Below are positions 8,694-32,131 of a stretch of DNA of 64,000 bases, one piece after another. The stretch comes from Octopus sinensis (lineage: Eukaryota): assembly GCF_006345805.1 (NCBI RefSeq), contig NC_043004.1, positions 48,050,001 to 48,114,000 on the forward strand, read 5' to 3'. Under the pieces are notes generated by a model. It worked only from the letters and a program-made list of their open reading frames with translations. It did not search any database and was not told where the DNA came from. The position numbers were made by a program, and so were the translations under genes. Numbering within the stretch: position 1 is the first letter of the stretch; the number at the start of each line of letters is the position of its first letter.

Positions 8694-8736
<43 letters not shown>

Positions 8737-8879
8737 TCATAATTCTAAATTTTTACCATTGATAAACAAAAAATATTGTTGAAACTAGCATTCTCAACAA
8801 ATTTGCCTATATTTTTTTCCTGTATGTAAACACACCACCTTTTTTGTTATATGTGTGTATATATATATATGTATATATA

Positions 8880-9430
8880 TTGTGTTGGCAAGAAAATTCC
8901 GGTGTTTTTGGTGTGAAATAAAAGTCTGGCAACTTCATGATTCTCCGCTCTGGTCCTTATCAGCCAAAAATTGTGATTCCAGGTCATCATCATTATTGCA
9001 AGTTTTGCCATCCAAAGAATTTTGAAAACTTCGAAAGAAATACCAATTTCATGGTAGAAGGTCAGGGTTATATGGTGGATGTGACATCACTTTCCAATCC
9101 AGCTCCAGTAATTTTTCACGAGTTAGTAAAGACGTGTTTGGCGTTGTCATGGTGAAATACGACTCATTTACGATTTGCCAATTCTGGCCGTTTTCCTTTG
9201 ATTGTTTCCTCCAGTTTCATCAGTTATTGATAGTAAACATCTAAATTGATCGTTTGGTTCCTTGGAAGCAGCTCAAAATATGCAACAACTTTGTAATCCC
9301 ACCAAACTGACAGCATGAGATTTTTTTTCTTTTTGATGCAATTCAGCTGTCGATGTGATTTGTATTGGTTCATTACGCTTGGACCATGATCGTTTTCAGT
9401 TGACGTTATTATAGACAATCCATGTTTCAA
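8880..9430 (-). mobile_element. Mariner transposase fragment (catalytic region)
   Basis: LMLSVWWDYKVVAYFELLPRNQTINLDVYYQQLMKLEETIKGKRPELANRK.VVFHHDNA matches the mariner DDD domain; frameshifted. Confidence 0.88.
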
Positions 9431-9434
9431 CACC

Positions 9435-10545: not shown

Positions 10546-10639
10546 GTGGAAAAATCGGCACACGGCTTAATTTTGTGATTTTTTTTTTTTTTTTGTACAT
10601 ACAGTCGGAGCGGCTCATTTCGTGTAATCCACTTTTTTA

Positions 10640-12030
10640 ATGTTTCCTCTCCCCCTCATCCTCACCCCCACCCTTCCACTACTCCAACCTTCCCACACAC
10701 CCCTTCCTCCTCTCTCTCTCCTCTCAGCCTTCCAACGCTTTCCCAACCCCCTCCCCTACCTAACACACCCTCCTCTACCCACTTCGGTCTGTGGTTACCA
10801 TTCCTCTACAGCTCCACTCTGAAGCGGAGTGCTCTCTTCTCAGTAAGGGTCTCCGCTTCAAGCCCCTTACTACATCCAGGCGAAAGTTAAACACCTCCCC
10901 GGCCGAACTCTCGGCTCTCGGCCCTTCGATGTCTCCGACACCGCAAAGAGACTGTCATCAAACCTGCCGACAAGAGTAGATTTGTAGTGGTGTGGCGCGC
11001 AGACCTTTACATGGCTGAAGCTCTTCGTCAACTTCAAGACACCTCCTTCTATTGCTCTCTGCCCTTCAACCCCACGCCTAACTACCAACAGATTGTGTCC
11101 TTCAACTATTCCTGACCTCATTTCCTCCTCCTGTCTCCCTCCAACTGCCTCCAACCTCATTGTCCGTATCCCAGACACTCCCACTATTTACTTCCTTCCC
11201 AAAATTCACAAGCCCAACAACCCTGGCCGCTCCATCATCTCCGCCTGCAACTGCCCCACGGAAATGATCTCCAAATGCCTCGATCGAGGCATTTGGAGAT
11301 CATTTCCGTGGGGCAGTTGCCTTCACACATCCACGACACCAATCATGCTTCCCGTCTGTTTAACTCTTTCTTCTTTCCCCCAGGCCCCTCTCAACTTCTG
11401 TTCACTCTTGACATTAAAAGTTTACATACGGTGATTCCACACAACGAGGGATTTCTTGCACCTAAACACTTCCTTCACCTTCGGCCTGATACCTCTACAC
11501 ATCTTCGTCTGGCCGAACTTGTCCTCTCCCTCAACTGCTTCTCGTTCGCGGGGTAGTTTTACCAAGAGTTCTCGCGAGTGGTCATGGAAATCAGAATGGG
11601 CTCCAACTATGCGAACTTATTCGTTGTCTAAGTTGAGGCCTAAATTTCCTCACAATTCACCTCGCCCGTCGAATTTCTCCACATTTCTGTCAGCATGCAC
11701 TACTCCGCTCTCACTGCCTCCATCCACTACAAACACACTGCCTCACACTCCTGCCTTAACTTCTCCTCCTACCACCCTACCCACACCAAGCTCTCCATTC
11801 CTTACTCCCAATTCCTACTCAAGCTCAGCAGCGACGATCATGATTTTAAGACTCAGTCACAACTCACGGCTCGCCAATTCATCCTACGTAGATATCCCCT
11901 CACCATTATCTACACTGCCCTTTCCCGGGCATGATCTGTAGACTGTGCATCTGTTCTTTCTCCTCTCACTCGCCCCACCCTTAACCGTCTCTCGTTTACC
12001 CTCATCTACCACTCCTCCACGCTCATTATC
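10640..12030 (+). mobile_element. Degenerate Penelope-like reverse transcriptase
   Basis: SEAECSLLSKGLRF, VIKPADK...VVVWR, IYFLPKIHKPNNPGRSIISACNCPTE, LFTLDIKSLHTVIPHNEG, LAELVLSLNCFSF, MGSNYANLFV, HPTHTKLSIPYSQF; many frameshifts. Confidence 0.9.
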
Positions 12031-12358: not shown

Positions 12359-12504
12359 ATGGCCAGTTACATTCACCGTCCAAGTAAAGTCTCCTTCATA
12401 TATCAAACAATACCGCAACGCGTGTACCAGCTTGCTGAAAATGACCCTGATAAACCAGCCCTTGTCGTTTATAAAAACAAAGAGAATCGGCAGGAGATAA
12501 CTCG
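12359..12504 (+). CDS. ANL-family acyl-CoA synthetase-like gene A, coding exon 1
   Basis: ATG 12359 gives MASYIHRPSKVSFIYQTIPQRVYQLAENDPDKPALVVYKNKENRQEIT(R); donor CG|GTAGGT at 12505. In-frame TGA upstream at 12326. Homologous to gene B exon 1 (25/49 identical, both 146 nt). Not listed in the ORF track. Confidence 0.88.
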
Positions 12505-12894
12505 GTAGGTTTTGGTTTTAATTTTATCTGAATGTCTATGTTTATCTCACAATACCTTCGTTGTATTACATTTCTAAATATTATGTAAGTTCCTCACCGT
12601 CGCTTTAGCCACCAATATTCGACTTGGGTCGAAGAGAATTTGTTGAGATGGATTTTCTAAAGTTGGATACCCTTTCTATCATGAACTCTCAGCTATTTCA
12701 AAGTAAGGTAACAATTCTCCGTGACCACACATGATTTAATGGAAGGACATCAAAATATTTGACAATGATACTTGCTTAAAAACTCTTACAAGATGCCAAA
12801 GAAAGGACACATACACGCACGCACACACACACACGAACACACACACGAACACACACACGAACACACACACATATATATATATTTATATATATAA

Positions 12895-13040
12895 AACAGG
12901 CTTCCTTTAGTTCCGTTTACCACATCTACTCACAAGGCTTGGTCGACCCGGGACAGATGTAGAAGACACTTGCCCAAGTTGCCATGCAATTGGACTGAAC
13001 ACGGAGTCATTTGGTTGCGAAGCAATCTTCTTATCACACA
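12895..13040 (-). mobile_element. CORE-like (OR2-type) SINE in intron of gene A
   Basis: Contains the cttgggcaagtgtcttctac core and tRNA-like head shared with copies at about 18743, 18940, 20290, 42630-42980, 47230-47540 and 50820. Confidence 0.75.
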
Positions 13041-13118
13041 GCCACGTCTGCGCCCATAACAAGTAATAAATACATTGCATAACATTTAATAGTAATAATA
13101 TATGAATTTGTTTATTGC

Positions 13119-14140
13119 TTGGTACCCAAAAGAAACCGGAATTTTACAATATTATTTTATTCACAAAGTTTTACATGTTTACACATTTATCGCCTTCAAC
13201 ATATTCTCCATTTGAAGCAGTGCATTGGTCCAGAGGCGTTTTCCATTGTTAGAAGCAGTCCTAAAGCTTTTGCGAAGAGATGCCTTTTAACGCCCCTGTC
13301 GTTTTTTCTCCACCTCTTCCACGTCTGCAAAACGTTTTCCTTTAAGGACATTTTCATTCTGGGTGGGTGGGGCAAAAAATGTTCCAGGGTGCAAGATCAG
13401 GTGAATAGGGAGGGTGGGTAAACGAGGTCAAGCCCTTTTTTGTCAAAAGCTGTCTCATCCTCGAGGTGGTTTTTGCAGGCACATTGTCGTGAAGAAACCC
13501 CCACACTCCACTTTGACACTGGTCAGGGTGTTTTCATCTCGCCGTGTCTCGCAAACTTTTCAGAAGTGCCAAGTAACATGTCTGGTTAACAGTTTGACCA
13601 GGAGGAATAAATATTGTGTGAACAATTCCTTTCGCCTCGATGAAACAAATCAGCATCGTCTTGACACTGGACCTCACTTGACTCACAGTTGGGGGGGGGG
13701 GGGGCGTGGTGACATTGAATGCTTCCATTGACTTGATTGCTACTTCGTTTCCAGTTCGTAGGCGTAGTTCCAGCTTTCGTCATCAGTGATGATCCTCGAA
13801 AAGGTTCGAATCAACTTCCAACTGATTTTTTTCAGTTCACTGCACGAACTCAGTCATGACATCTTTTGATCTTCCGTGAGCAAGTGAGGTACAAATTTTG
13901 CTGCAATTCTTTTCATTCGCAATTCCTCGCTCAAAATTCTTTGGCAGGGAATCCAGGACACATTAGTCATATCAACAAGTTTGTCAATTGTTTGACGACG
14001 GTCCTCAAAAATCAGTTCATGAATTTCGTGATGTTTTCATTTGTTCAGGAGATCGACGGTTGCCCTGGTCGATATTGGTCTTCAAGTGACCATTCCTAAA
14101 GTGTGAAGATTACTCGTAAATGTGTGTTTTGCTCATGGTA
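13119..14140 (-). mobile_element. Mariner transposon remnant in intron of gene A
   Basis: VRSSVKTMLICFIEAKGIVHTIFIPPGQTVNQTCYLALLKSLRD..WGFLHDNVPA..LKGKRFADVEEV; TIR-like end ggtacccaaaagaaaccggaatt at about 13121. Confidence 0.88.
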
Positions 14141-14579
14141 GCGGCCTTGTAAGCTGAGGATAGAAAGCTTCGAATGACCCGTCCTTGTTTTTTTTTTTTT
14201 TTTTTTTTGTATCGTTTATCTGGATGTTTTGTTGTCCCCTTTCGTATCACCTAGCTGTCCGGATTTTTTGCGTCCTTGTCCCATTTTGTATTATATATAT
14301 ATATATATATGATACATGGAGGTTTTTCTAAAAAGGAACGAAAATTGACATTTCGCATTTCTTGAATTGCGTGGCACTTACAGTTTGAGAATTTTAATTC
14401 TCATTATATTATTGAAATTTGAGGTAACATATTGAGTAAGCTTGAATGATTTAAGAAACCTAAATCTGGAGACGCAAAAAGAATTCCTAAATACATCGAA
14501 TCCCAGATATCTGCAAAACTGTTTTTAGTATTTCACTTTCGGTTTTTAAGTTTTAAACATAATTTTATTTGGAACACGT

Positions 14580-14790
14580 TAAGGTGGCGAACTGGCAGAA
14601 TCGTTAGCACGCCGCGCAAAAATGTTTAGCGGTATTTCGTCTGCCGCTACTTTCTGAGTTCAAATTTCGCCGAGGTCTATTTTGCCTTTCATCCATTCGG
14701 AGTCGATAAATTTAGTACTGGGGTCGATGTAATCAACTATCCCCCTTCCCCCGCCCAAATTTCAGGCGTTGTGCCAATAGTAGAAAGGAT
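14580..14790 (+). mobile_element. tRNA-derived SINE in intron of gene A
   Basis: ggtggcgaactggcagaatcgttagcacgccg head plus the same core as the other copies. Confidence 0.85.
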
Positions 14791-15335
14791 TATTTGGAAC
14801 ACCTTCTCCTCGATTTACGACCGAGTTCTGTTCTGACTTACAGGTCGTAAGTGGATCTGGTCGTATGTCGGGTTTATAGTTTTCAACATTATTTTGATTC
14901 AAAATGCAACTAATGCTTGAAAATGACTGAGTGAGAGACAGTGGCAGGCAGTGGATGCCTGGGTCAGAGGAAGACCTGCGTTTCCAGACACTAGCCATAG
15001 TTATCGTTACGCGCAGCTGCTCAGAGTCCGAAAATCGATTCTTTTTTACCTATTTACTTATGTTTTATAGTTTCTTATTTTTTGTGGTTGTGAGTCCGGA
15101 TGGTCGTAAATCGCATAGGTCGTAAGTCGAGGCTAAGGTGTATATATAAAAACCTGTTCATTTCTGGTAGACTTGAAAATTTGAAAAAGTATAACAAGCA
15201 TTATTTAAAAGAGTTTTCGATATTATAGTATTGTTTAAATGTCTATTTATGAGATACTTTACATACACTTTTATGCTGAAAGCATTATAAAGTATATCTA
15301 TTTAAGCATGTGTTTATTCTTTTCTTTTATTTCAG

Positions 15336-16821
15336 GAAACAAGTTTACGATGGCGCTGTAAAATTTGCCAAAGCTCTTATCAATTTAGGAATTCAGAAAG
15401 GAGAGTTAGTTGCCTACAGTGTATCCAACTGTGTTGAATGGTTGATATATGAGGTCGGCATAATTATGGCTGGGGCAATTTCTGTGAAATTAATGCTTGG
15501 ATTGGCAGATTTTAAAACGGTATTACATGGCTGCAGTTTAGTTGTATTTGATTCCAAATATATTTGGGAAAACTTCCTCAAAATCGCTGACATTTCTGAT
15601 AATGGGAAGGTTTCCTCTGAAATATATCCAAACTTGAGATTAGCCATTGCTGTCTCAGAAGCGGAGCGTCCTGAAAATGTTTTGTCTGCAGCTAAGTTGA
15701 TGGAAGATGTAAGTAGTAAAACTGATATAATATTTCCCTCCATGAGTCCTGATGATACTGCACTAATTTCTCAAACATCTGGTTCAACAGGTGTTCCTAA
15801 ACGAATTTGTCATTCACATTTTAACTGGATCAATGCATTTTACACATTTTACACAGATGCTGGTGTCAATGAAAAAGATAAGGCTTATTGTAGCCGTCCA
15901 ATGGGATATGTTGTTGGCTATCCGTCAATGTTTTTGTCAATTGGCTGCACACACGTCACGGGAGATGTGAAACTGCTAAATAATAACGAAAACATAGATT
16001 TCATTATAGATTTATGGAAGACAGAAAAATGTGACGTATTATGGGTAGTTCCACAGAGATTAAAATATATCAGAGAATCAGATTTCCGAGTAAAACGGAT
16101 TATATCAGGAGGAGATTTAATTGCAAGAGACTGGATTGAAAATTCTTTTCGTCTGGCAGACAAATTTTCCCTTGCATATGGAAGTACTGAAACGGTAATA
16201 TCATCACAGAGACTATTCTCCAAAGAAGATATGGAGCAACATGTAGAAGGAATGTTAGGTCGACTGCTTCCAGGTTCAGAGGCTAAAATCCTTGATGAAA
16301 ACAAAAATGTTGTTCCCATCGGAAGCATTGGGTCTCTGTACATTCGTAATGGTTGGATGCAAAAAATATTTCAGGATGGAAGGAATTGTTTAGAAAAGGG
16401 TTGGATGCCTACGTCAGATATTTGTAAATTGACTCCTGATGGTGATCTCGTAATGATAGGAAGAAGTGTAGATTTTATTAAAAAGTCTACAGTGAAGTTA
16501 TCCATAAAAACTATTGAAATATACGTTGGCCGTCACCCCAGCGTTGCAGAAGTGGTTGTGGTACCAATACCAGATGAAAGCTTTGGTGAATGTATATGCG
16601 CCTGTGTTACCATTCTACCGGGTCACAAATTCAGCAGAGATGATTTAACAAAATTCTGCACAGAAACAATGCCGCATCCAAGTAATTTTGACCATGTAAC
16701 AATAATTCCGGACTATTTCTTACATTTTACCAGCTTTCCAAAGCTTCCCAGTCAAAAATATAACAAACCTTCCATAAAGTGTTCTGCAATTGAAATGGTG
16801 AAGGAATCATACGGAAAGTAA
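15336..16821 (+). CDS. ANL-family acyl-CoA synthetase-like (AMP-binding) gene A, coding exon 2; spliced product 543 aa
   Basis: Acceptor ttttatttcAG|G at 15334-15336, phase 2 compatible with exon 1. P-loop QTSGSTGVPK (15772-15801), YGSTE, GWMPTSD, GRSVDFIK, PSQK with the A10 Lys. Uninterrupted ORF; ATTAAA at 16861. Confidence 0.93.
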
Positions 16822-17529
16822 AATTCCGAATTTTGTTTTTCAATAATTGTTGCTTTTCTTATTAAAGAGATATATCAACTGAACTCTGTTTCTTGAAAAC
16901 TGTTTCATAGCGCATCAATTTCAAATCCCGTGCAATGAAGTGAAAAATATTACAGCTCTAATTGAGAATATGGCGAGGGGATGCCAGAACATAAGAGTTA
17001 AATTTGTAAAATGTTCTCGAATACTTATCTTTAAACTATATTAATGTATTCTTTGACATGATTTTAGAATAGAAATTATTTCCATGCTTCTAATAATGAC
17101 ATTTTGAGTTGCAGACATGTCTCACTCAATTTCTAATACTTGAACATTCACTTTAGGTCCCTGATTTGGAGATAATTTCTTTCTTTCCTCCCACCAGTCT
17201 CGAAGGTCCTGAAAAGGCCCATAAGTAATGAAAGAGCCATACTAGAGTTTGTACGGCTGGATCCGAATGTTCTTAAAAATGGAAGGACTCATCAGGACAA
17301 ACAACTGTCTCGATGCATTACCGAAATGAAATGTTCAGTTAACAAAATGTGCCGAGTCCCAGCTTTTCCCCAATGGAGCAGAATTATTCTATGACTATCC
17401 TGTCTTCTTATGAGTACAAAAACTTTTCATTTGATACCTGTATGACGTCGTGCAACCATGCAGAGGACCACTGATGGGAAAGAATGTGTCACAGTTGAAA
17501 AATAATGTTGATATTGTTTTATGTGAATA

Positions 17530-18255
17530 GTTATTTCTTTATTACCCACAAGGGGCTAAACACAGACAAACGGATTAAGTCGATTATATCGACCCCAGTG
17601 CGTAACTGGTACTTATTTAATCGACTCCGAAAGGATGAAAGGCAAAGTCGACCTCGGCGGAATTTGAACTCAGATCGTAACGGCAGACGAAATACAGCTA
17701 CGCATTTCGCCCGGCGTGCTAACGATTCTGCCAGCTCGCCGCCTTCGTCTTATTTGAATAGATACAAGAAAAGGTAAATAGCTAGAGAAACGATACCACG
17801 GCTAATTTTTAAATTTTATATGATACAATTTTCATGTCATTTACCGTACTAACATCTTTGGGAAGACATCTTATCTCATTGGCTTCGCTCATTTAATATT
17901 CAGTCCTTCTGAAAGCGGCTAGCTGAGAGACACGTTAGCACGCCGGGCGAAATGCTTAGCGATATTTCGTCTATCTTTACGTTCTGAGTTCAAATTCCGC
18001 CGAGGTCGACTTTGCCTTTCATCCTTTCGGGGTTGATAAATTAAGTACTAGTTACGCACTGGGGTCGATGTAATCGACTTAATCCGTTTGTTTGTCCCCT
18101 CTATGTTTAGCCCCCTGTGGGTAATAAGGAAACAAATATTTCTTCAATCTTTACGTACTAAGTTCAAATTCCGCCGAAGACGACTTTGCCTTTCATCCTT
18201 TCGGGGTCGATAAATTAAGTACCAGTTGCGTACTAGGGTCGATCTAATCGACTGG
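17530..18255. mobile_element. Oppositely oriented SINE copies (17530-17745 minus; 17925-18255 plus, two units)
   Basis: Same family core on opposite strands about 180 bp apart. Confidence 0.85.
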
Positions 18256-18742
18256 CCCCTTCCTGCAAAATTTCGTTCCATGTGCCTAGAGTAGAAAAGT
18301 CCTTGTGCTAAAACGGGAAGCCAATATTCGCATTCCCTGACTAACTATCCCTGAAGAGAAAAAAAGTGTCCCCAGTAATTGTGAGACAATTTTAATTTCC
18401 GATCGAAATTTAACCTTTGAGAATGGTTTAAATTCTTTCTCTCTATAAAATTTGCAGTCACGCATCTACATGAGATAACCTTCTAGCCTATATTTCTTAG
18501 TCCAAATCTTGCCAGATCTTCTAGATTTATATCACTTATGCCGAAAATATAGTCATCGATCGATGTACTTCAATAAATAGTCGAATTAAATTCTTAGTCT
18601 GTTTTCTTGTTTTTCTTTGTTATTCCTGTTATTTGTTGTTGCTATTATTGTTGCACATTTAAGATATGATTTGAAAATACTTAGCCATTGTTTGAATTTA
18701 ATGCCATCGCCAACGAATTTCTAATTTCATAAAGATATCGTG

Positions 18743-19090
18743 CAGGCGCGGCGACGTGGTTAGAAGTTTACTTCCCAACCACATGGTTCCGGGTTCAATT
18801 CCACAGCGTGATGCCTCGAGCAAGTGTTTTCTACTATAGCCTCGGGCTGAACAAAGCCTTGTGAGTGGATTTGGTAGACAGAAACTGAAAGACAACCGTC
18901 GTGTGTATGCATGTATATATATATATATATATATACGACAGGCTTCTTTCAGTTTCTGTTTACCAAATCTACTCACAAGGCTTTGGTCGACCCGAGGCTA
19001 TAGTAGAAGACACTTGCCCAAGGTGCCACGCAGTGGGACTGAACCCGGAACCATATGGTTGGTAAGCAAACTACTTATCACACAGCCACT
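18743..19090. mobile_element. Two OR2-type SINEs tail-to-tail around (TA)n
   Basis: About 18743-18900 (+) and 18935-19090 (-) are inverted copies. Confidence 0.85.
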
Positions 19091-19094
19091 CCAA

Positions 19095-19590
19095 AGTATG
19101 CTTTTGGTGACATACAAAGTGGTGCCAAATTCCAGTTTTGGACAAGTGCTGAACTATTCAATCACCAGCATTTCAAAGCCAAAGCACTGCTACAAACCAG
19201 TATCATTCGTAATCTGCTTTTTTCAGATGCTACTGCACTAGTAGCGGCTTCATTAAAGGAAGCTGAGAAACTTCTAGACCAGCTTTGACCATCAGTATAA
19301 AGAAAATGGAAGTGATCCACCAACCTTGCCCTACTCCTAAAACAGTTCGGGGTGTCAAGTAGAGGCCATCTGTACACAATTTCCCTAACACTCCTAATAA
19401 GGTAGATGGGTAAAACCTAACTTATGTGAAGTTATTTACATATATTGGTAGTAAAGTGAACTCGAGCGCTTCCCTTGAAGATGAAATCGTCAACCGTCTT
19501 GCACAAGCAACCAACGCATTTCGTAAACTCCATCACCACCTATGGAATGAAAGGAACATTAAAATTCACACCAAAGTCTATTAAGTCTAC
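19095..19590 (+). mobile_element. RTE-clade LINE RT fragment
   Basis: LFNHQHFKAKALLQTSIIRNLLFSDATALVA, FTYIGSKVNSSASLEDEIVNRLAQATNAFRKL..LWNER match the RTE RT C-terminal half. Confidence 0.85.
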
Positions 19591-21219
19591 ATGTCTACAA
19601 AGCTGCCATTTTTGATTTGGTCGGCCCGAGGCTATGGTAGAAGACACTTACTAAGTTCATTACTTCCTACTTCAAAATGGAGTTGGGGTGCACACGAAGT
19701 AGTTTACCCTACTATGTATTTTATTATTAATATCTTCAAAACAAAGAACAATGTCTATATTATACATTATAAGGCAAACATAATGCAAATGAAAACCTGT
19801 ATACAGACTCGAAGACTTGTGAATTTAGTTTATTGCCAATAGAGAACCGGGTTCATGAATATGCATGAATTACCAGCTTTTTTTCAAATACTTATACACA
19901 TTAACCTATGTTTGTGGCCATGAATGTATATTTATAATTATTACAATTAGTTTATATGTGTAGTGTATCACTCCTCCGAATTCTATATAAAGATAATGAA
20001 TAAAAGAATACGAATATATCTTTTATTCATTTTCTTTTTTCTGTGACTGAACTGCAGGTCACCAGCTTCAAAAATTTGGGTCGCCAGCTTCAAAAATTTG
20101 GGTCATCAGCTTGGAGGTTTTAATGGATAAAACTACTCCAGTATTTCTTTAAGGCCCAGTACTTATTCTAGTGGGGTGTTTTTGCTTAACCGCTGAGTTT
20201 CAGTGACATGAAAAAAGTTATACTGGTCGTCATGTGGTGAACACAAACATATCGGCTCATATACACACAGTCGCACTTATATATAAATAAATACATGCCT
20301 GGTTTCTGCAGAGTTTCCATTCGAATAGTTTACTCACAAGGATTTGGTAGACCTGAGTACTAAAAATAGAAGATATTCAAAGTTCCGCACGGTGGGACTG
20401 AACTCGAAACTTCTTGGCCACACAGTTATGTCTGCGCCTATCTTCAATACTCTTGGCTAAATTTAACCAACTTACCAAAAGCTCGGGATCTTACTTTTCT
20501 CAATACTAAATGTGCTGACAGTGATTTGTTTCGTTACAATAATATACAAGTAAACATAGCAATAGGAATTTTAGCCAGCACTGCTACGACTATTGTAAGG
20601 AAATCACCTGCATAATATATGCGAAAGTGTTGTGCATTTCGACGATTTTTGCTGCCTTTGTCAAGTGTTGCAAGGGACCTAGAATTATTGGTCAGCCACA
20701 TTCAAATATCAAACAAACTCATTGCTTATAAAACCACTTCAGATGTTCGTATCGACTTTGCTTTTGGATGTCTAGTACTTAACTTTAGTTATATTTGTTG
20801 CATCTCTGAGCTATTGGGCATGCATATACATATACACACGTGCATATACATATACACACGTGCATATATACAGACATGCATAATGACTTTCAACTGTGTG
20901 TATGATCATCACTGACAAATTATCATACCCTAGATGTTAAAGACAATAGCCATCAGCAATGCCCGTGCTGAAATCTAAAGTCAGTAACTACTTGCAGAAT
21001 ACTGCTAAGACTTACCTACAAAGTCAAAATGAAGGAAGAGCAATATCTCCGGCTTCCCAATGAGACAAGGGCTATTTCGGAATTTCCTTCTCATAGGAAG
21101 GTGTCTAAATAAAGACTAGTGGTCTCTCACTCCCAGATTTTTTGTAGCCATTGACTCTACTGAGTTCATCCGTCTTTTGACTGGTTTTAATTTTCATCCT
21201 ACACGGTTTCCAGATCATG

Positions 21220-21575
21220 GCAAAACGATGGCAAGAAAAGCCCCTTCATGGTAAATACTGGGCTAAATTAAACGCAAAAGAAATAGACAAAGCAAAATCC
21301 CAGCAATAGCTCAGAAGCTCAGGACTCAAACCAGAGACTGAAGGATTTTTAATTGCAGCACACGACCAAAGCCTCGCCTCCAGAAATTACCAAAAACATG
21401 TAATGAAAAGAAACAGAGCAAGAAACTGCAGAATATGTGGAGATGGACAAGAAACAATAAATCATATTGTCATTGACTTCCCAGTCCTGGCTAAGAAGGA
21501 ATGTATTGCAGACACGACAGAGTTGGGACCTACATACACTGGAAGCTATGCCAACACTGTGGTATAACAACAGAA
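21220..21575 (+). mobile_element. R4/Dong fragment (CCHC zinc knuckle region)
   Basis: WQEKPLHGKY..GLKPETEGFLIAAHDQSL..CRICGDGQETINHIV..RHDRVGTYIHWKLC. Confidence 0.88.
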
Positions 21576-21579
21576 AAAA

Positions 21580-22250
21580 AAAAGATTTTAGCTACTTTAT
21601 GAGGGTTTAATGCTGTATCCAAGTCTTTAGTTAGGTTATTTTTGTTCCAGATTTTATATGTATATGTTGTGATGTTTTCGTTCTTTGGGTAGAGCACTGC
21701 TATAGAATAAGCGTGTAGGATTGAAATATATTCCTCGCGTGTCCATTTATGCTTTTTGATTTTATTTGCGGGAAATGAGGAATAACGTCCGGCCTTTATT
21801 TTGACGGTAGTCTTTTTCGTAGGGTACCGGTCCTTTCATTTCTGGTGTTAAATTGTTTTGCAGGTGTAGTTTTTCGTACTTTTTGTGTAACAAGTTTAAA
21901 GTATGCACTTCCTGATTGTTATTCTTGGGTTGAATAATACCGGCATTATTTAATTTATTTTTATTTATTTAATTTTTTTGTACATGGTGTTTGGGGACGG
22001 AGATGGTCTGGTTTTGATTGGATCGTAATGTGGCAAGCGTGTTTACATGTGCTGTGCGAGCTGTGGAAACGATATACAGTTAAAATACATAATTTCATTT
22101 TGAAAATAGTAATAAATTTCAATGAGTATTACTTACTTGGATATAGTCCAACATTTTGTCAACTATTTTTGGCTCCATGTGAAGTCTTTATTCTCGATGT
22201 TTTTGGATAGATTTCGGAGCAGTTTTTTACCGCTCTCACATGTTAAACAT
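21580..22250 (-). mobile_element. R4/Dong 5' fragment, same family as 3965-4700
   Basis: Direct nucleotide homology (gtgagagcg..ctgctccgaaatctatccaaaaacatcg...). Begins just after an (AAT)n tract. Confidence 0.85.
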
Positions 22251-22321
22251 CTCTGGTTATTATTATTATTATCATTATTATTATTATTATTATTATTATT
22301 GTTATTGTTGTTGTTGTTGCT

Positions 22322-25300
22322 GCACAGCTTCTAACGCCGGAGATGTACTGCGGTGTCAGCTGTTCACTGACTAAGGTAACACCTTATTTTTCGAGCACCT
22401 TCCGGAGTATTCGGGCGGTTCCAAGCAGTGCTGTTTTCTGCAAGTGATCCACCCTTATTGCAGCCCCTATTTGTTCAACGTACATCTCGAGATTTTTGCT
22501 TACTGTTCCCAGGGCTCCGACAATTATTGCTACTACTGCTACCTTTTTCATCGACCACAGCTGCTTAACTTCCCAAGCTAACCTGTCATATCTCTTGACT
22601 TTTCTTTCTTCCTTATCGCATACCTTGTTGTCAGCTGGGCATACTATATCTATGATTCAGCATAGTTTGTTTTCTTTCTCAATTAAGACTATGTCCGGCA
22701 ACCTATTCTCTATCTCATGGTCGCACAGAATCATGAAATCCCATAGGATCTTTGCATTTTCATTTTCGACGATGCCTTTGGTTCCATAGATTCTGCATCT
22801 ATCACTTTCTGATGCGTTGTCTATTCTGTATTTTATGTAATTTGTTCTTAGTGCTTGCTCTTGGGCAGCACAGATTAGAGCCTACGTTCCCAGTTTTAAA
22901 TCACTTTTGGTCATCCACAACCATCTTTTTTCTCTGTCTTATCTTCAACATTCCTACGAAATTGACCATGCATTCTTTTCTTTACTCACCTATTTTCAGT
23001 TTCATTCGATTTAAATTTCTTGTACAGTGCTTTATCTTTGCAGTCTTTCATCCTACACAAGCCTAGCGGTTCTGTGACATTTTTTCATACCATGCTATGT
23101 TGTTTTCTTCTGCTTTAATGCTGTATTCACATCCAATAAGTCCTCTTCCCCCCTCTTTTTCTTGGTACATACAGTCTGTCTGTGTCACTTTTTGAGTGGA
23201 GTGTCCCATATCTAATTAGTAACTTCCTTGCCTTTCTGTCTAAGTTGTTTAGTTCGGTACTGTCCATCCGATTACCCCTGCTCCATATCTAAGGGGTGAA
23301 ACTGCCCAGGTGTTGATAGTTTCAGGCTTATTCCGTCCGTTTAATTTCGACTTAAGGATTTATCTCAGTCTGCGCAAGTACTCCCTCTTAAATTTTTGTT
23401 ATTTCTTTCTCCATCAATTTATCCATTTCCAAAATCCCCAATTACTTATAGCCCGTCTCTTCTATCGTTAGCCCGTCCATACATTTGATTTTGCCTCTCT
23501 TCAAGACAAACACACCACACTTTCTGAGTGCGAACTCAATTCTGATATCAGCACTGAAGGTATACACGAGGGAACACGAGTATCAACGAGAGAACTGACT
23601 TGGGCTTCATCTTTACCATAAAGTTTGAGGTCATCCATGAATAACAAATGGTTTTGCTATGCTCAGAATCAGTGTTAGTGGTATCAAACACAGTACAAAG
23701 ATCAGTGGGGACAGGCAGTCCCCTTGGAAGATGCCCAACTGTCCCTAAACTTCTTCCATATGCTGTCAGGTCCGTCCTCCAATTCGCCATACCTTTTCCA
23801 AGCAATCGCTCAGCATTCGATGCAATCTCAAACAGGTTCATACACTCCATAATCCATGACATGGCTAAGTTACTTTTCTTCCTCTTGCAGTCTTTGAGTA
23901 CAGTTTTATCTATCAGGAATTGATCCTTGGTCCCTCTGCCCTTACGCTCGCAACCTTTCTGCTCATGTGGCAGGAATCCATTTTGTTCTAGATGTTCGTA
24001 CATTGACTCTGCAAGTATTCCAGTCAATAACTTCCACATAAGTGGCAAACAGGATATCGGCTTATAATTGTCTACCGTATAGTCTTTTCCGATGTTTTTC
24101 AGGCACAGCACTGTCCTACCCAATGACAACCACTCTGGAGTTGCTTGATGGGAACTTAACAAGATGTTGAGTTGCGCAGCTATTCGTGCATAACATTCAT
24201 CAAATCTTTTGATCCAATAGCCTTGAACTTCATCTGGTCCCGGGGCATCTAATTGCCTATTTTTGTTTGCTGATTTCCTTCACTTCCCTAACTGAAATGA
24301 CTAGTTCTGCCTGTTTTGGACAGACTACTGTTTGTTTCAGTTCCTTCAGCCTCCTTCTTGTGGTCCTTGTCTTTGCTCCAGATGTCAGTCCAAAAACCTT
24401 TGGCTTTCATTGTTATCTGATATCAACTTTTCATCTGTACACTCTCCATTTATTTCTTTATAGAATCTCTTCTGATCTACTCTGAATAACCTATTCTGCT
24501 GGTAATCTTTCATCCGTTGGTCGTATCTTACCGTATTTGCTTTCTTTGCAGCGATGCGCCGTTTCAGTTACTCTATTACTACTTTCAGGCCCTTTCTTTC
24601 AATATTATACTTCCTTTTCAGCGCCCTGTATTTTTGTTCGCTTTTAAGCTCCCTTTTCTCTTTTCGGTCTAACACAGAGATTTCCTTCGAGAGCATGTCT
24701 AACCCTGCCTGGATTCTTCTTTTCCACCATGGATCTTTTTCTTTTGTCACTCCCATTGTTTCTTTTTCTTGACATCGACACCCACATTTTCTGCCACAGC
24801 AATACTTGCTGCCTTGATCAAATTATTTGTTTCTGTGATGTTTCATTGACATTTTTCGTTTCTTGGTTCAATTTCCATCGGTCAACCTTTTTAAGGTTGC
24901 AAAAAATGTCGCTATCGTTCTCCTGTAGTCTTGCTTTTATTCTGTCGTAGATTGCCTTTTGTTCATCTGTCATATCGCCATTAGTCTTTTTTATCTTCTT
25001 TTAAAACATCTATATGTCTCTCAGCAATTAAACTACCACTGCTTCTTTCCTGTGCTATGAGATTACTCTTATTAGTAAGAACTGTATTTTCATCGTTATC
25101 TCTGCTGCTATTTTCCAAGACCCGTCTTTTGATAGCTTCGAGCTCTACTTCTGTGAACCAACGTTTTTTTTCTTATCGCTCTAGCTTGATCACATAGCCT
25201 GTGTTCTGTGAGTTGAAACAATCCCTTTTCTCTCCAATACGATGTCGGTAACCCCTAATTTGAGCACCATTTTCACCATTGCTCAGATAACACTCCATGA

Positions 25301-25590
25301 CCACAGCATTAATTTACTTGCTCCATCTACGCCGTGTGTGGTGGTCCCTTTCTGGATATCTACAGGCTGGAGCCGGACCAGAATCTCTGAGCCTGCCGGG
25401 TGCAACTCTGTCACCATCATTAGCTTCAGTTTCATTGCCCCCGTTATTCACAATATTTTGTTTTTCCATTGTCACTCATATGAGGTAGCGATTATCAGGT
25501 TGCGCAATTACCAGTATTTTTATTGTGACACCATCACTAGATGTATCATTAATCAGTCCATGGAGAGGTTCCACTCGTTTCCTTTCTTTA
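22322..25590 (-). mobile_element. Near full-length degenerate R4/Dong non-LTR retrotransposon between (AAT)n tracts
   Basis: N-terminal RRWSK..VVMECY..RGYR..HRLCDQARAIRK; RT region [42 protein letters not shown]; restriction-like endonuclease KILWDFMI.CDHEIENRLPDIV..IVGALG..QKTALLGTARILRKVL. Confidence 0.92.
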
Positions 25591-26236
25591 TGATTATTAT
25601 TATTATCATCACTGATATCACTGATATTATTACTTTCATGTGTAGTAGCAGCAGTGTTTGCAACAACAGCAACAGTAGCAGGGGCAGTGTAGTGGTTAGG
25701 GTAATAGATGGGCCTCAGATTCCTGTGCTATCATAATAGTAGTATTTATAGTATTAGCAGCTGCAGCATATTATTTTTATCATTATCACTATCACTACCA
25801 CTACTATTGTTATTATCATTATTACTATTTCCATTTTTTATTAAAAGATTTTACTAAATGTTCTTTATTTTCAACTTTTGTCATGTGATTGTTGAAGGAA
25901 ATAGTCGGGGAGTAGCTTGGTGAATATATCATATTCTACAGATCTATAAATAGATTCGGCAGATGGTGGGGAGGTCAGCCATAGAAACAAAATAATCTTC
26001 TCATCTTTTGGGTCAGCAGTGACCACTGACAGCGCTGCCTTGAAAAGAAGCAATTCAACCTGTTCTATTTGTAATTACTGGTAGAAAAAACAATAATATA
26101 TATACATATATGTATACATATATAATTTTAAAATAGGATAAAATCTTCATAAGAATTTATCAAGTAGTCAGCGTAAAAAACCTCATAAGGGAAAAAATCC
26201 AGCAATTTTTTCACTTAAATGTATTTATTTATATTA

Positions 26237-26692
26237 TATAGAGGGCATTATTATATATAAATGCAACATGCTAGGGGGGACTCTTAAAGTCAAAACCACT
26301 AAAATAAATAAACACATAGTACCGAATGCAACACTAGAAGCAAGTCATTTAAAAACAGAATTCAGCTGCAGATCACTGTGATTTCATAATCAATGCAGTG
26401 GTGCACTCTTTACTCAAATATACTACGTTGGATATACTACGTTGGATACGATAGTTGTTTGCCTGGTATGTTGATTTTGTTTATTATAAATCTTGAATTA
26501 TGCTTGCACTGATGAGTAAAGAGTGCACCACTGCACTGATTATGAAATCACAGTGATCTGCAGCTGAATTCTGTTTTTAAATAACTTGCGTCGAGAGTTG
26601 CATTCGGTACGATGTGATTATTTATTTTAGTAGTTTTAACTTTATGAGTCCCTCCTAGCGTGTGGCATTTATGTGTAATAATGCCCTCTATA
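26237..26692. repeat. Inverted repeat (about 180-bp arms, 96-nt spacer) flanked by (TA)n
   Basis: 26237-26416 is the imperfect reverse complement of 26513-26692. Confidence 0.92.
26504..26563 (+). ncRNA. Type I hammerhead ribozyme motif with canonical core, in a Penelope-type inverted repeat
   Basis: UUGCA-CUGAUGA(26509-15)-stem II GUAA..AGUGCA(CCAC)UGCACU..UUAU-GAAA(26544-47)-UCAC(A)GUGA-UC-UGCAG; predicted cleavage after C26558 (AUC). Confidence 0.82.
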
Positions 26693-27066
26693 ATATATAT
26701 ATATATATATATATACTGATATTCACGTCGTTGAATTTTTGAATTTCTGAATTCATTTGTGTTGTTGCAATAAAAGATGCATTTACGTATTTGGGTAATA
26801 TATTAAAGTTTTTAAGTTTTCTTGAGATGTTCGTTTGTTTGTCCAGTTGGAGAATACAGTAGAACTTTTGCAATGAAAAGGATGCTTACATTTTCGAATA
26901 CTAAGAGGGAGTCAAAAAGAAAAGGAAGCGAGTTTTAGATAGTAAAGTTTAAAGATTTACTATATATGGTCTTTTGTATGACCGCACAGAGACAAATGAT
27001 ATCGTTCTTTTTTGCTGTTGATAGATTTATATCGGGTATACTATTATTATTATTATTATTATTATT

Positions 27067-27900
27067 GTGTCGTTTCGCTTTGTCAGAAGGCCTCCAGGAA
27101 AGCAAAACAACCCACGCTTCACGACGAAAACAGTGAAGTTTGCGAGTAAGAGTCTGATGCTTTGGGGATACATAAAAAGTGGTGGTTCAAGAAATTTGGC
27201 TAAAATTGACGGTAACTTGAACAGTGCCAAAATACATCCAGTTGCTGAAGGAGAATTTGATACCAGACTTGGATGGAGGTGAGATTTTTCAGCATGACAG
27301 AATTCCATGTCACAGATCCCGTGCAACACAACAGAGTCTGGCTGATAAAGGTGTTACCTTATTGACAGATTGCCCAGCTCAGAGCCCTGTCTTAAATATC
27401 ATCGAGCAAATGTGGACAGAAGTAAAGAGAAGAGTTCGTCAGAAGAATCCAAGCAATCTTGAAGAGTTGTGGGAGCTCAGCCACAGAGAATGGTATCTCA
27501 TACCTATGAAGATCGTGAAGGATTTGTATGCATTGAAGCAATTATTCAAGCTAAGAGAAGCTACATGAAATATTAACAATATACAGTAACTTATTCAAAT
27601 GAACATTATGTAATAAATTTTCACTATAGACATTTTTTTCTGTTTTAACACAGTGTATCTTGATTGGTTTATGTGAGGTGGCCGAAAGGTTTTGCATGGT
27701 CATTTTCGGTGGTCGTCTCGCATTTTCCTCTCTCATTTGGAACCACTACTACAAAATATAATGATTAGGTATAGAAATGACTCCGACAGGGTCAATGTTT
27801 CATCTGTAAAAAAGCGCAGTGGGAAACATCCACGTATAAGTTGGTAATTAATTGAAATTTACAATTGTTTAAAGTAGTCGAAGACTTTTGCGCGGTACCG
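27067..27900 (+). mobile_element. Tc1-family transposon 3' part (DDE domain and right TIR)
   Basis: TVKFASKSLMLWG..GNLNSAKYIQLLKENL..IFQHD..PAQSPVLNIIEQMW; ends cttttgcgcggtaccg|TA at 27900. Confidence 0.9.
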
Positions 27901-28253
27901 TATGTATGTATGTATGTATGTATGTATGCATGCATGTATGTTTGCATGTATCTATGTATGTATAGAAAGTGTACTCTATAATATAATATATCATAGTATT
28001 TATTACTGAACATGCGTTATTGAATATTTGTATTTGGAAATCTGTACGTATTAGCAATTGAAGGTTTCATGCTTTTTGGAAGTGCATTAGCGACATGACT
28101 GGAGTGAAATCATTTCCGATCGGTAAAAAAAAAACAGTTCACAGTTGCTATTCTGTCCTTACTTTCTGCCAGCGAAATTATATACCGAAACTCTTTTAAT
28201 TACAATATTAATATTTAGGAACTAGTTTTAAAAGATATTATTTATCATATTAC

Positions 28254-28398
28254 TATAAGGTTGTCCCAAAAGTTCGTAGAAAGTCTTGGAAAATAATGGT
28301 CTTTATTTTGAGGAATAATTTTTGTTGTTTTTGTTAGTACTTGGCGAGTAAAAATTCAATTTTCGCAAGTGTTTACGAACGTTTGGGACAACCTAATA
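28254..28398. mobile_element. Tc1/mariner-type MITE
   Basis: TIRs ta(t/a)aggttgtcccaaaagttcgta...tacgaacgtttgggacaacctaata with TA ends. Confidence 0.75.
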
Positions 28399-29214
28399 TT
28401 ACAGAAATTTTTTTTAAAAAAAAACAACTTTAATTACTGTGGTGGTGAAATAACAATTTTATTAGAAATTTAAGATATACCAGCGGATATTTATTATATA
28501 AATGAAAGTATATAATAGACTGAAAATTCGTAATTGCCTTTCAAATATCAGTTGGTTTTGGAGTGATAACATGTGACTAATAAGTACTCTTACATAGTTA
28601 TTGCGTAGGCTTGCGAGCAATTTGGTAGGACTAGTTTAATGTCAGCATAGATGAATTAGATTACTAGATTCTGTTATTTTACATTTTTTTTTTAAAGTTC
28701 AAGTCCCGCAAAGATCGGTCTTGCTTTTTCTCCTTTTTGCTTGTTCTTTTGGGGTTGGTAAAATAAGAAACTGTCAAGTATTGATGTCGATTCGAACGAC
28801 TAGACTTCCCACATTTAAAACTTATTGAAATGACAATATTTAAGAAATTATTAGTATTCTTTTATATATCTTTTAATGGGAGAGAAAGACCCGTTTCAAG
28901 ACCTTCGAGAATGATGAGATGGAAGTGTTCTTAAACTGGAAGACCGACCCGAATGTTTGCATCCAATAGAATGGACTCTGCTAAAAGCACCCACGGTGAT
29001 AGTATTAAGCCGGCCGACAGGTGAAGTCTAGTAGCCAAGTAGGACAGAGCGGGATTCGAACTCAGAATAACAAATACAGTCTGTAGTTTTGCTGTTTTGT
29101 CAATCCAGCAACTTAAATTGTTATACATTTTTTTAAATATTTTTATCAACTCTTTTTCATTAAACTTTTTTTGTCGAAAAGATGAAAGGAAAAGTAAGCT
29201 ACGATACAGGGAAA

Positions 29215-29450
29215 GGGGCGACAGTCAAGTGGTTGTAGATGACGGAAGCGATGTACGCATTCGCCACCTCCGCCCCACCCTTCAGAGACAGCTTCCTCTC
29301 TGCCATTTCTGCGTGAGACTGGCCACCCAGCTCGTCACCTAACACCTAGATCAACCGTAGACGAGAAAGAGCGCTTGGCACCTGGCGTGTCGGCAAGCGC
29401 CCGCAACCCTTTACCATCCAAGCAATGCGCTCGGAAGAAGTTCCACATTG
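29215..29450 (-). mobile_element. Tx1/L1-type LINE fragment
   Basis: Nucleotide homology to 57140-57270 (cagaaatgg..agagaggaag..gcgtacatcgcttccgtcatctacaacc). Confidence 0.75.
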
Positions 29451-29918
29451 GAGTTTTAAAAGAGATTAGTGACAGGGAAGAGCGACGACGTCCTCAGTGA
29501 AATTTGAACTCGGAACGAAGAGAATCGGAACAAATACCGTGAAGATTCTGTCAACATTGTTGTGAATCAGTGTAAGTTACAATTATTATAGTAAAGACAT
29601 TGGAATCAAATATTTCAAAAAGCATTATAAATCGCAGTATACTCAACATTTGTTTTCTTCAAGGCTACTATTTTAATTAATTTATCAATCATTGATGAAT
29701 GTAGATATGTCGGAATTAGTTGACAATAATTAAAATGTTGCTTTTGATATTTGGAAAGATTCCTGTCTGAATGCTTTGAATGGATTGGAAGTAGAAATAT
29801 AAAATAAGGGAAGAATTTCGAGAACTAAAACATTCTCCGTTACTAATTCAGAGTTGTAACGAAATAAATTCTAAGAATAAATATCCACTCCAGGTTAATT
29901 TCAGCAACCGACTATGAA

Positions 29919-31434
29919 TTATTCCGGATTCAGTTCTGAAGAAAGTTTTTTTTTCTTAATATTTTTTTCTACTAAAGCAATTGCTGTTGATTTAATTGAC
30001 CTTCTGTCAAATTTCTGAGAGGTTAATAATGGAAAGCTTGTAAAATGTAAGAAATAATCTGGGTGCAGCGTTACAATATCAAAACCGCTTTGCTGTGGCA
30101 TAATTTCCAAGCAGAACTTTTTAAGCCCGTCTTCATTGAATTCGTGATTATCTCGGATGGTAATACACGCACACACCCGTTCACCAACTTCTTCATCCGG
30201 TATCGGAACCACAACTACGTCTTCTACACTAGGGTGATGACTGACATATTCCTCAACTTGTCTGACAGGTACCTTCACTGTTGACTTCTTGATAAAATCT
30301 GTATTTCTTCCAACTAGAAAAAAATCCCCCTCTGGTGTCATATAACCTATATCTGACATTGACTGCCAGCCATTTGTATTTGTCGAATCGCCACCCAGGT
30401 TTATTTTAGTTGTCCATTTATTTCGAACTTCAATATTGCCAACCTCTCCTATATTAACGGTTTTTCCGTTATCGTCAACAATCTTCATTTCTGTATCGGG
30501 GAAAGGCCTCCCTAGCATTTTCGGAAGATGTTCAGAAATATTTTTTTTTGTAAATACCCGTGAAGTTAAAAATGTAGCTTCACTACTTCCATACACAATT
30601 TGTATATGCTCAGTAAAGTTTAAGGAATGCATTAATGATTCTTTTGTAAGCATATCTCCACCGGTAAGAATAGCCTTTGCGCGATGCCCACAGTCTCTGA
30701 GTAGTTGTAGATGCTGTGGCAGAAGCCAAAGTATATTACAGCCTTCTTTTTTCCATATATTTTCAATAAACTCTAAGTTCTTAATGTCGTTTAGCATTTG
30801 AACATTTCCAGTTACATGGGTAGTTCCAACAGAAAACAACCCAAATGGATATCCACCGATGTATATCATTGGACGAGTGTTGTATGTTGTATCATCTGAG
30901 GTTACACTACTTGCATCCATGGCATGTACTATGCTATTCAACCAGTTATAATGTGTGTGATAGATATTTTTGGGTCGGCCTGTACTACCGGAAGTTTGGC
31001 AAATAAATGCGATGTCTTCTGGGTCCAAACTAGGTAAGTCGACTTGCTCACTGTCATTGATATTCAACATAAGGTTTGTGGCAGATAGAACGTTGGATGG
31101 GCAATATGTGTTGGATATATTGATGACAAACTTCAATTCCGGATATATTTCGCTAGTTACTTTACCGTCATCGGAAATTTGAGCAATTGCACAAAATTTA
31201 TCCAGTGAATCTTTTGAGTCAAATATCACCGCTTTGCATCCGGAAAAAATGTCTTTAAAATCTCCTGACTTTAGACTCAGCCTCAATGAAACTGCTCCGG
31301 CCATAATAATTCCGGTATCGTAGATTATGAGGTCTACACAGTTGGATATACATAAAGCGACGTGATCTCCTTTCTTAACGCCTAACTTAACAAGAGCTTT
31401 TGCAAACTTCACAGTACCGTCATACACCTCTTTT
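29919..31434 (-). CDS. ANL-family acyl-CoA synthetase-like gene B, coding exon 2; spliced product 553 aa
   Basis: Acceptor tttcAG|A at 31436-31434, phase 2. QTSGSTGRPK, YGSSE, GWQSMSD, GRNTDFIK, TSQK. Uninterrupted ORF; 238/494 identities to gene A exon 2 with no gaps (hand count). Confidence 0.93.
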
Positions 31435-31556
31435 CTGAAAATATATATGGAAAGTAGAAGTGAGATAGTGCACATATCAAGGCATTGGTGACATCTAACA
31501 TCATCTTTTTTAATTACTCTTAATACTACTGGAAGTATTATGCCTCACTAACTGAT

Positions 31557-31593
<37 letters not shown>

Positions 31594-31689
31594 GCTTCCA
31601 AATAGAATAAGAAACCCGAGATTATATAAGAAGAAAACGGCTAACACATTAGAAATGAAGGGGAGAAAACGGAAAAAAAGAAATGAGCA

Positions 31690-31980
31690 ACAGACGGACA
31701 GACAAATAGATTGATTGACTGACAGATAGTAGGAGAGACAAACAGACAGACAGGCAGACAGACAGATGGACAGAGAGACAGATGGACAGACGAAGGGACA
31801 GACAGACTGATAAATCGACAGAGAGACAGGCGCACAGACAGACAGACTGATAGATAGATAGATAGACGAAGGGACAGACAGATAGATAGATAGACGAAGG
31901 GACAGACAGACAGATAGATCGACAGAGAGACAGGCGCATAGATAGATAGACAGACAGACAGACAGATAGATAGATAGATA
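31690..31980. repeat. Compound GACA/GATA microsatellite filling much of the 551-bp gene B intron
   Basis: Repeated gacagacagac/gatagataga with gacgaagggacagac subunits. Confidence 0.92.
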
Positions 31981-31985
31981 GTTAC

Positions 31986-32131
31986 CGCGTCAATTGCTGT
32001 CGATCGTCTTTTTCTTTATATACAACAAATGCTAATTTGTTTGGCTGCTCTTCCGCCAAGCATTTTAGTTTCTCAGGAATCGTTTGCCAAACAGCTGGTA
32101 TTCGACCTGGTTCATGGATATAACTTGTCAT
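31986..32131 (-). CDS. ANL-family gene B, coding exon 1
   Basis: ATG at 32131 gives MTSYIHEPGRIPAVWQTIPEKLKCLAEEQPNKLAFVVYKEKDDRQQLT(R); donor CG|GTAACT at 31985; 146 nt, as in gene A. Confidence 0.88.

Follow-up and report, generated by a model that had tools for sequence, protein, structure and literature searches.

A 64,000-bp stretch of the Octopus sinensis genome (contig NC_043004.1, positions 48,050,001 to 48,114,000, forward strand; hereafter the window) shows two outstanding open reading frames (ORFs), located at 15310-16821 (+) and 29919-31475 (-) in the ORF listing, which belong to two genes here named A and B. Both resemble adenylating enzymes of the ANL superfamily, which includes acyl-CoA synthetases and luciferases, and the locus raises the question of whether they are ordinary acyl-CoA ligases, genes acquired from bacteria, or relatives of the wsluc proteins of the firefly squid Watasenia. 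Our analysis indicates that A and B are probably functional two-domain ANL genes, a divergent offshoot of the ACSF2/YngI type that belongs to the wsluc family, arranged convergently and kept by selection, whose products would follow a standard mechanism similar to that of coenzyme A (CoA) ligases.

Structure and conservation of the gene pair

Gene models were obtained by reading the DNA upstream of each large ORF and splicing the exons by script. Gene A, on the + strand, and gene B, on the - strand, have two exons each, lie tail to tail and encode products of 543 and 553 amino acid residues, respectively. Both first exons have 146 nt, and the intron interrupts in phase 2 the same codon, Arg49 (CG/G in A and CG/A in B). 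The features of the locus are:

12359-12504 (+): gene A exon 1, ATG plus 48.67 codons, phase-2 end inside Arg49, donor CG/GTAGGT
12505-15335 (+): gene A intron, 2,831 bp, GT..AG
15336-16821 (+): gene A exon 2, with the rest of the AMP-binding N-domain, the whole C-domain and the stop codon
16822-29918 (no strand): tail-to-tail spacer, 13,097 bp, with both 3' untranslated regions (UTRs) and debris of repeats and transposable elements (TEs)
28973-29229 (-): probable 3' UTR segment of gene B, 690-946 nt past the stop codon, matching a published hepatopancreas cDNA amplicon
29919-31434 (-): gene B exon 2, with the stop codon
31435-31985 (-): gene B intron, 551 bp, GT..AG, mostly microsatellite
31986-32131 (-): gene B exon 1, 146 nt, with phase and codon position as in gene A exon 1

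The first-pass annotation of the window had described a tail-to-tail pair about 13.1 kb apart, with identical exon architecture and the only intact ORFs in 64 kb. The models bear this out, as the stop codons face each other with 13,097 bp between them, both introns fall in codon 49 and only the ORFs of A and B exceed 204 residues in the window. Furthermore, tblastn with A and B against the window gave only the four known exons, and no third ANL copy, fragment or pseudogene was found in it. The intron of gene B contains an (ACAG)n-type microsatellite at 31690-31978 (about 72 units at 70% match), which produces a spurious ORF of 96 residues on the coding strand, as well as a (GA)n run at about 31555-31600.

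Exact-sequence look-up in public annotation found the spliced proteins letter for letter as the O. sinensis RefSeq entries XP_029640032.1 (A) and XP_029640336.1 (B), therefore the splice models are right. Both genes, which lie on the 107.27-Mb chromosome, were thus already annotated, A as "medium-chain acyl-CoA ligase ACSF2, mitochondrial-like" and B as "putative acyl-CoA synthetase YngI isoform X1". Their orthologues in O. bimaculoides are XP_014779992.1 and XP_014779995.1, respectively. In Octopus vulgaris, the window corresponds to OX597821.1 at about 26.60-26.65 Mb, with 97.7-98.4% identity, collinear and in reverse orientation. Both ORFs are intact in this species, with a coding identity of 99.0-99.6%, and the intron of gene A is 94% identical, below the coding sequence (99%). 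The C-terminus of gene B (29919-29960) shows an A-run indel, with the O. sinensis tail ending in KKKKLSSELNPE and that of O. vulgaris in KKKNFLQN; judging from the sequences, the tail of B past the ANL domain seems to be unconstrained.

Global alignment of A and B shows 263 identical residues out of 543, without internal gaps, and 10 additional C-terminal residues in B, exactly the value that had been counted by hand (about 48%, gapless). BLASTP of the exon-2 ORFs also gave 48% identity with 0 gaps (E = 0). The proportion of nonsynonymous differences between the paralogues is 0.33, and that of synonymous differences is 0.735, which is saturated. When the Octopus genes were compared with their Argonauta orthologues, the ratio of nonsynonymous to synonymous substitution rates (dN/dS) was 0.14 for A and 0.21 for B. 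Each gene is thus under independent purifying selection, and the long selection on both that the first-pass annotation had read from their similarity is borne out.

Argonauta hians shows the same convergent unit: the orthologues of B (P0002) and A (P0008) face each other tail to tail with 2.66 kb between them, and each has a first exon of 49 codons and the intron position found in Octopus. The duplication and inversion that gave rise to A and B consequently predate the split between Octopus and Argonauta; they probably postdate the octopod-decapod split, dated to about 270-284 million years ago (PMC7708342). Since the duplication, both copies have been kept as a convergent pair by purifying selection. 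The conservation of the pair and its intron from Octopus to Argonauta and the selection estimates for each lineage are new here.

Catalytic motifs, kinship with wsluc and probable chemistry

The assignment of both genes to the ANL superfamily, made at first sight of the sequence, agrees with domains, core motifs and fold. Pfam found the N-terminal domain AMP-binding (PF00501) with E-values of 1.8e-40 in A and 6e-44 in B, and the C-terminal domain AMP-binding_C (PF13193) with 1.5e-09 and 6.4e-07, respectively. The AlphaFold2 (AF2) model, with a predicted local distance difference test score (pLDDT) of 87.7 and a predicted TM score (pTM) of 0.82, showed in Foldseek TM values of 0.73-0.80 to benzoate-CoA ligase, CahJ, 4CL, MenE and human ACSM2A. 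The core motifs are QTSGSTGVPK (A3), YGSTE (A5), TSD (A7), GRSVDFIKK (A8) and SQK (A10) in gene A, and QTSGSTGRPK, YGSSE, MSD, GRNTDFIKK and SQK in gene B. The catalytic P-loop is retained in both proteins, as are the Glu of A5, the Asp of A7, the Arg of A8 and the Lys of A10. Across 19 members of the family, the residues T196, S197, G198, G201, K204, E334, D410, G424 and K523 (gene A numbering) are invariant, and the A8 residue R425 is kept in at least 90% of them.

Possible kinship with the wsluc proteins had been proposed from the sequence alone. Table S4 in Gimenez et al. 2016 (PMC4899746) and UniProt supplied the wsluc sequences; wsluc1 was compared over its first 399 residues. The complete sequence of wsluc3 (P0142) and another full-length protein of Watasenia (P0145) came from a database search whose 5-residue word filter missed the octopus proteins, so that its short list is not informative on the breadth of the family. 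Over about 395 residues, wsluc3 shares 40.4% identity with A and 42.1% with B, against 26-29% with other mollusc members; for wsluc1 the values are 37.8 and 39.7%, respectively. A tree generated by the neighbor-joining (NJ) method, not by maximum likelihood, on 528 columns with 200 bootstraps, joins the wsluc/decapod clade and the octopod clades in one cephalopod clade with 100% support, which together with the identity to wsluc3 upholds the proposed relationship. Within it, a decapod clade contains wsluc1, wsluc3 and their relatives (98%), an octopod cluster 1 contains the lineages of B, of A and of a tandem array, with A as sister of the array lineage (98%), and an octopod cluster 2 lies on another chromosome. 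The link between wsluc and octopus proteins is not a new insight, as it was published in 2016: that study described octopus proteins with as much as 40% identity to wsluc1-4, and XP_014779992, the O. bimaculoides orthologue of A, grouped with wsluc in its tree (PMC4899746).

A further contig, whose sequence falls with the decapod (wsluc) clade (L006, ENA ERZ21867824 ctg72613l, 2537-8680), shows two tandem wsluc-like copies, the first of them frameshifted, and carries apart from these an exon-1-like piece that aligns with residues 1-54 of wsluc3. On this basis, tandem duplication and the early intron are probably common to squids.

From the conserved residues and the fold, each enzyme is predicted to bind Mg-ATP through the A3 P-loop and to activate a carboxylate substrate by adenylation, with the help of the A10 lysine; after this step, the C-domain would rotate about the A8 hinge and the acyl group would move to a thiol acceptor, most likely CoA. 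The tandem expansion of the family, its specific A4 acyl-pocket motif and a digestive-gland cDNA signal lead us to guess that the substrates may be medium-chain or dietary/xenobiotic carboxylic acids, with paralogues diversified in specificity. The cDNA signal comes from Liu et al. 2018 (PMC6011040), who published a hepatopancreas amplicon for XP_014779995.1; it aligns to 28973-29229 of the window, on the strand of gene B, with 86.9% identity over 268 columns. A literature search for expression of octopus ACSF2/YngI gave nothing beyond PMC4899746 and PMC6011040. Relative to bacterial homologues, A and B have no N-terminal extension past the conserved MxSYxHxP start, and their C-termini, -SYGK and -LNPE, are not of the SKL type. 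The "mitochondrial" label is doubted on these grounds, and the two proteins are probably neither mitochondrial nor peroxisomal, as judged from their ends.

Several points weigh against the assignment of A and B as selected genes of the wsluc family with a CoA-ligase-like mechanism. Substitutions between O. sinensis and O. vulgaris are few and noisy (11 nonsynonymous and 5 synonymous in A, 3 and 2 in B), too few for an informative dN/dS at this short range, and the Octopus-Argonauta comparison was used instead. The motifs also deviate from the canonical ones: the Gly that follows PK in A3 is replaced by R or N, A7 is TSD or MSD and not TGD, the Gly-Gly of A8 is replaced by Ser-Thr, A10 is SQK and not SGK, and the His/aromatic motif of A4 is replaced by RPMxYxxGYP. 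The deviations in A7, A8 and A10 are common to the Argonauta orthologues and that of A4 is family-wide; the altered A8 site touches the loop that, in ANL structures, lines the pantetheine tunnel of CoA ligases. Such changes could reflect an unusual acceptor or acyl pocket. In the NJ tree, support for the monophyly of octopod cluster 1 is just 69%, and the wsluc clade is sister to this cluster at only 58%, a branching by which A and B are best called co-orthologues of the wsluc group. The sole enzymatic case within the family, the wsluc crystals, is indirect. Its substrate, coelenterazine disulfate, falls outside the ordinary carboxylic acids, and the term "acyl-CoA ligase" may therefore misdescribe the chemistry of the clade as a whole. 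Finally, the hint of expression consists of one amplicon with 87% identity, for which carry-over of genomic DNA is possible because the product is intron-less.

Some of these same features would fit A and/or B being luciferase-type ATP-dependent oxygenases or photophore-crystal-type structural proteins instead of CoA ligases. Both share a clade and 40-42% identity with wsluc, the cephalopod clade as a whole has lost the A8 Gly-Gly that characterises CoA ligases, and the residue equivalent to firefly Lys443, by hand alignment to firefly numbering, is a Lys in A and B (within FIKK). However, neither O. sinensis nor O. vulgaris is known to be luminous. In Watasenia, wsluc3 and P0145 have diverged at A5 and wsluc1 at A3, while A and B keep the canonical YGSTE/YGSSE and TSGSTGxPK, which suggests that light chemistry is a specialisation of decapods or of Watasenia. 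In addition, the literature found, including PMC4899746, contains no catalytic light emission by recombinant wsluc. We therefore hold this explanation to be highly improbable, and light emission by A or B is not expected. The same small chance is given to a pre-luciferase chemistry ancestral to cephalopods, by which A and/or B would already act, through adenylation or oxidation, on substrates of imidazopyrazinone type or on others that are not fatty acids, and the whole family would derive from an intronless gene gained by a very ancient bacterial transfer or by retroposition; if true, dietary coelenterazine derivatives would be among the possible substrates of A and/or B in a non-luminous animal.

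Family breadth, the ACSF2 name and bacterial transfer

Searching with B recovered octopod paralogues with 39-64% identity, followed by bivalve and gastropod proteins with 26-31% and by bacterial ligases with no more than 26%. With a profile of 19 members, all the named members of the family were molluscs, with at least 415 bits, and the best non-mollusc was a bacterial fatty-acyl-CoA synthase with 249 bits. The family was found in the bivalves Magallana, Ostrea, Mercenaria, Saccostrea and Tegillarca, in the gastropods Haliotis, Physella, Lymnaea, Elysia and Batillaria, and in both cephalopod superorders. In O. vulgaris, nine exon-2 units share a strand from 26.515 to 26.629 Mb, of which one is frameshifted and the last is B; A is the tenth and convergent one. 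The pair is thus not isolated, since it sits at the end of a larger head-to-tail array. These searches, and the at least 10 paralogues on one O. vulgaris chromosome segment, agree with the mollusc- or cephalopod-expanded ANL subfamily suggested by the first-pass annotation: its named members are all molluscs, and in cephalopods it is strongly expanded by tandem duplication.

In the neighbouring array, OX597821.1 of O. vulgaris contains at 26,515,607-26,534,721 (L004, L005) six close exon-2-like units of about 1.46 kb, with a single recognisable exon 1 before the first of them. RefSeq "isoforms" of one gene, in O. sinensis (P0006/P0007) and in O. bimaculoides (P0004/P0005), show an identical exon-1 peptide of 49 residues and then diverge along exon 2. 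From sequence alone, a single 5' exon seems to be joined by splicing to alternative 3'-terminal exons that arose by tandem duplication. Furthermore, exon 2 is cut short in two O. vulgaris gene models, which continue into small, remote exons equivalent to 19211-19285 (+) and 40849-40920 (-) of the window. CAI9726605.1 is a model of gene A with 443 residues that has lost A8-A10, and P0015, which models the upstream paralogue over 42.8 kb, has a range that stops 92 bp before the ATG of B. The early-exiting models are either annotation artefacts or truncating alternative isoforms.

The RefSeq names would make A and B ordinary ACSF2 orthologues, that is, mitochondrial medium-chain acyl-CoA ligases. 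The NCBIfam searches lend this some support, as PRK12583, an ACSF2/YngI-type model, is the best model for A and the second best for B, and residues 2-538 of A align end to end with positions 4-555 of the 558-position profile. Nevertheless, the best models, PRK12583 and PRK06187, reach 167-192 bits against cut-offs of 832 and 476, with 167-179 bits for PRK12583. Of the characterised homologues of wsluc, human ACSF2 is the nearest, but its identity to that clade is only 24-26% (PMC4899746). Vertebrate ACSF2 is absent from the 120 top-scoring hits of the single-sequence search and from those of the profile search, and human ACSF2 was not among the sequences of the NJ tree. The at least 10 lineage-specific paralogues do not fit a one-to-one relationship, and neither protein has an N-terminal extension able to serve as presequence. 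One-to-one ACSF2 orthologues shared with other bilaterians and far from wsluc, the outcome that the first-pass annotation had set against its own proposal, are therefore not what we found. ACSF2 orthology is very unlikely and, as an idea, already largely refuted; the RefSeq names should not be taken as orthology.

A recent horizontal gene transfer (HGT) of bacterial acyl-CoA synthetase genes into octopus has been proposed by Liu et al. 2018, who list XP_014779995.1, the O. bimaculoides orthologue of B, among 12 octopus HGT genes "nested within bacteria homologs" (PMC6011040). In line with this, bacterial proteins outrank every named non-mollusc animal protein in our searches, although such top matches are expected by sampling alone because the database is overwhelmingly bacterial. 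The best bacterial matches are 23-26% identical, level with the 24-26% between wsluc and human ACSF2 (PMC4899746), and the taxon set of 2018 contained no other invertebrates (PMC6011040). A and B are intron-poor, with one intron each, yet retroposition of an animal gene explains this poverty equally well. The introns are spliceosomal, conserved from Octopus to Argonauta and also present in the cluster-2 paralogue, and the genes stand in a chromosomal tandem array among repeats. Moreover, the mollusc sequences are monophyletic in the NJ tree, outside the sampled bacteria. Since the family occurs in bivalves, gastropods, squids and octopods and its spliceosomal intron is conserved, a recent transfer specific to octopus is not supported and we consider it unlikely; any transfer would predate the mollusc radiation. 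The family is intron-poor throughout, and intron positions are not common to bivalve and cephalopods: the member of Mercenaria mercenaria (L008, CM038771.1 3001-5670) has a single intron after residue 309, versus residue 49 in cephalopods. This fits an intronless ancestor, which possibly arose from an ancient (pre-mollusc) transfer or from retroposition.

The closest non-mollusc relative, with 26% identity, is encoded at 495-2456 of a metagenome contig (L009, JGI metagenome 3300040954, contig Ga0451425_201431), and its protein (P0035) was considered as a bacterial sister of the mollusc clade. It shares the A4 and A5 motifs of the family, its reading frame continues upstream of the called start into an N-terminus that resembles those of the family (MATVVKLQRSYYHS...), and its flanks are AT-richer and non-coding, without neighbouring genes. 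Because of these features the contig was not counted as a bacterial donor; its sequence is probably that of a eukaryote.

Surrounding sequence and comparison with known systems

At least 38.5% of the non-exon bases in the window have matches at further octopus loci or elsewhere within it. Positions 4001-12000 are covered at 84-100% by matches to non-orthologous octopus loci or elsewhere in the window, and for this nearly full coverage they are regarded as dispersed repeats. Among seven mid-size ORFs analyzed with Pfam, only one had a match, a DDE_3 (Tc1/mariner-type) transposase fragment at 27224-27568 (+), in the spacer between A and B (E-value of 1.4e-07). The other six had no Pfam match, among them an ORF similar to reverse transcriptase (RT) at 23548-24162, also in the spacer, and the ORFs at 10870-11941, which look RT-derived by eye. 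ARAGORN found no tRNA-like heads of short interspersed elements (SINEs). The description of the background as decayed TEs is plausible, though demonstrated only in part.

The identity of the firefly squid luciferase is still biochemically unsettled. The octopus co-orthologues are intact, slowly evolving and have canonical adenylation motifs, which makes them natural comparison proteins for wsluc; comparing A and B with wsluc could show which changes turn an ordinary adenylating enzyme into one that forms crystals and produces light. What is added to the published picture is modest and consists of the conserved pair, the selection estimates, the motif comparison with wsluc, and the corrections to the HGT claim and to the ACSF2 label. 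The occurrence of the family across molluscs undercuts the published claim of a recent bacterial transfer for the orthologue of B.

Among known proteins, Watasenia wsluc1-4, arm-photophore crystal proteins and candidate ATP-dependent luciferases (PMC4899746), belong to the same cephalopod ANL clade, with 38-42% identity. A and B align collinearly with them along the whole length, starting at residue 1 (MxSY(I/F)HxP...) and ending at the C-terminus, and share the family-specific A4 (R-x-M-x-Y-x-x-G-Y-P), the A8 features and the invariant A10 Lys. They differ in coming from a non-luminous octopus and in their canonical A3 and A5: the A3 of wsluc1 is TSGTSGAFK, and A5 is changed to YSSVE in wsluc3 and to YSSNE in P0145. 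The 105-residue N-terminal extension of wsluc1 (PMC4899746) is also absent in A and B. The relation is one of co-orthology between whole clades and not one-to-one.

With ACSF2 and the YngI-type medium-chain fatty-acyl-CoA ligases of Bacillus, the pair shares the two-domain ANL fold, the adenylation residues and the end-to-end alignment to the model, but differs in its identity of about 25%, in details of A4, A7 and A8, in having no presequence-like extension and in its lineage-specific tandem expansion. The closest solved structure by sequence is FadD5 of Mycobacterium tuberculosis (PDB 8r2q; E = 1.5e-23, residues 28-504). This fatty-acid-CoA ligase falls in the same broad subgroup, although it is bacterial, of low identity and without the family-specific motifs. 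Firefly luciferase and the luciferase-like acyl-CoA synthetases of insects belong to the same superfamily and share its fold, with Foldseek E-values of about 1e-35 to 1e-36 to Luciola luciferase and the ancestral luciferase AncLamp, as well as the A10 Lys and the Lys443-equivalent. In sequence they are far from A and B, with a phmmer E-value against PDB of about 1e-13 compared with 1.5e-23 for FadD5, and wsluc proteins are 19-21% identical to luciferases (PMC4899746). Unlike firefly luciferases, A and B end without an SKL-type signal, and neither their similarity nor their C-termini place them among firefly-type luciferases. Relative to the firefly, a light-emitting use of this cephalopod clade would be an independent recruitment within the ANL superfamily.

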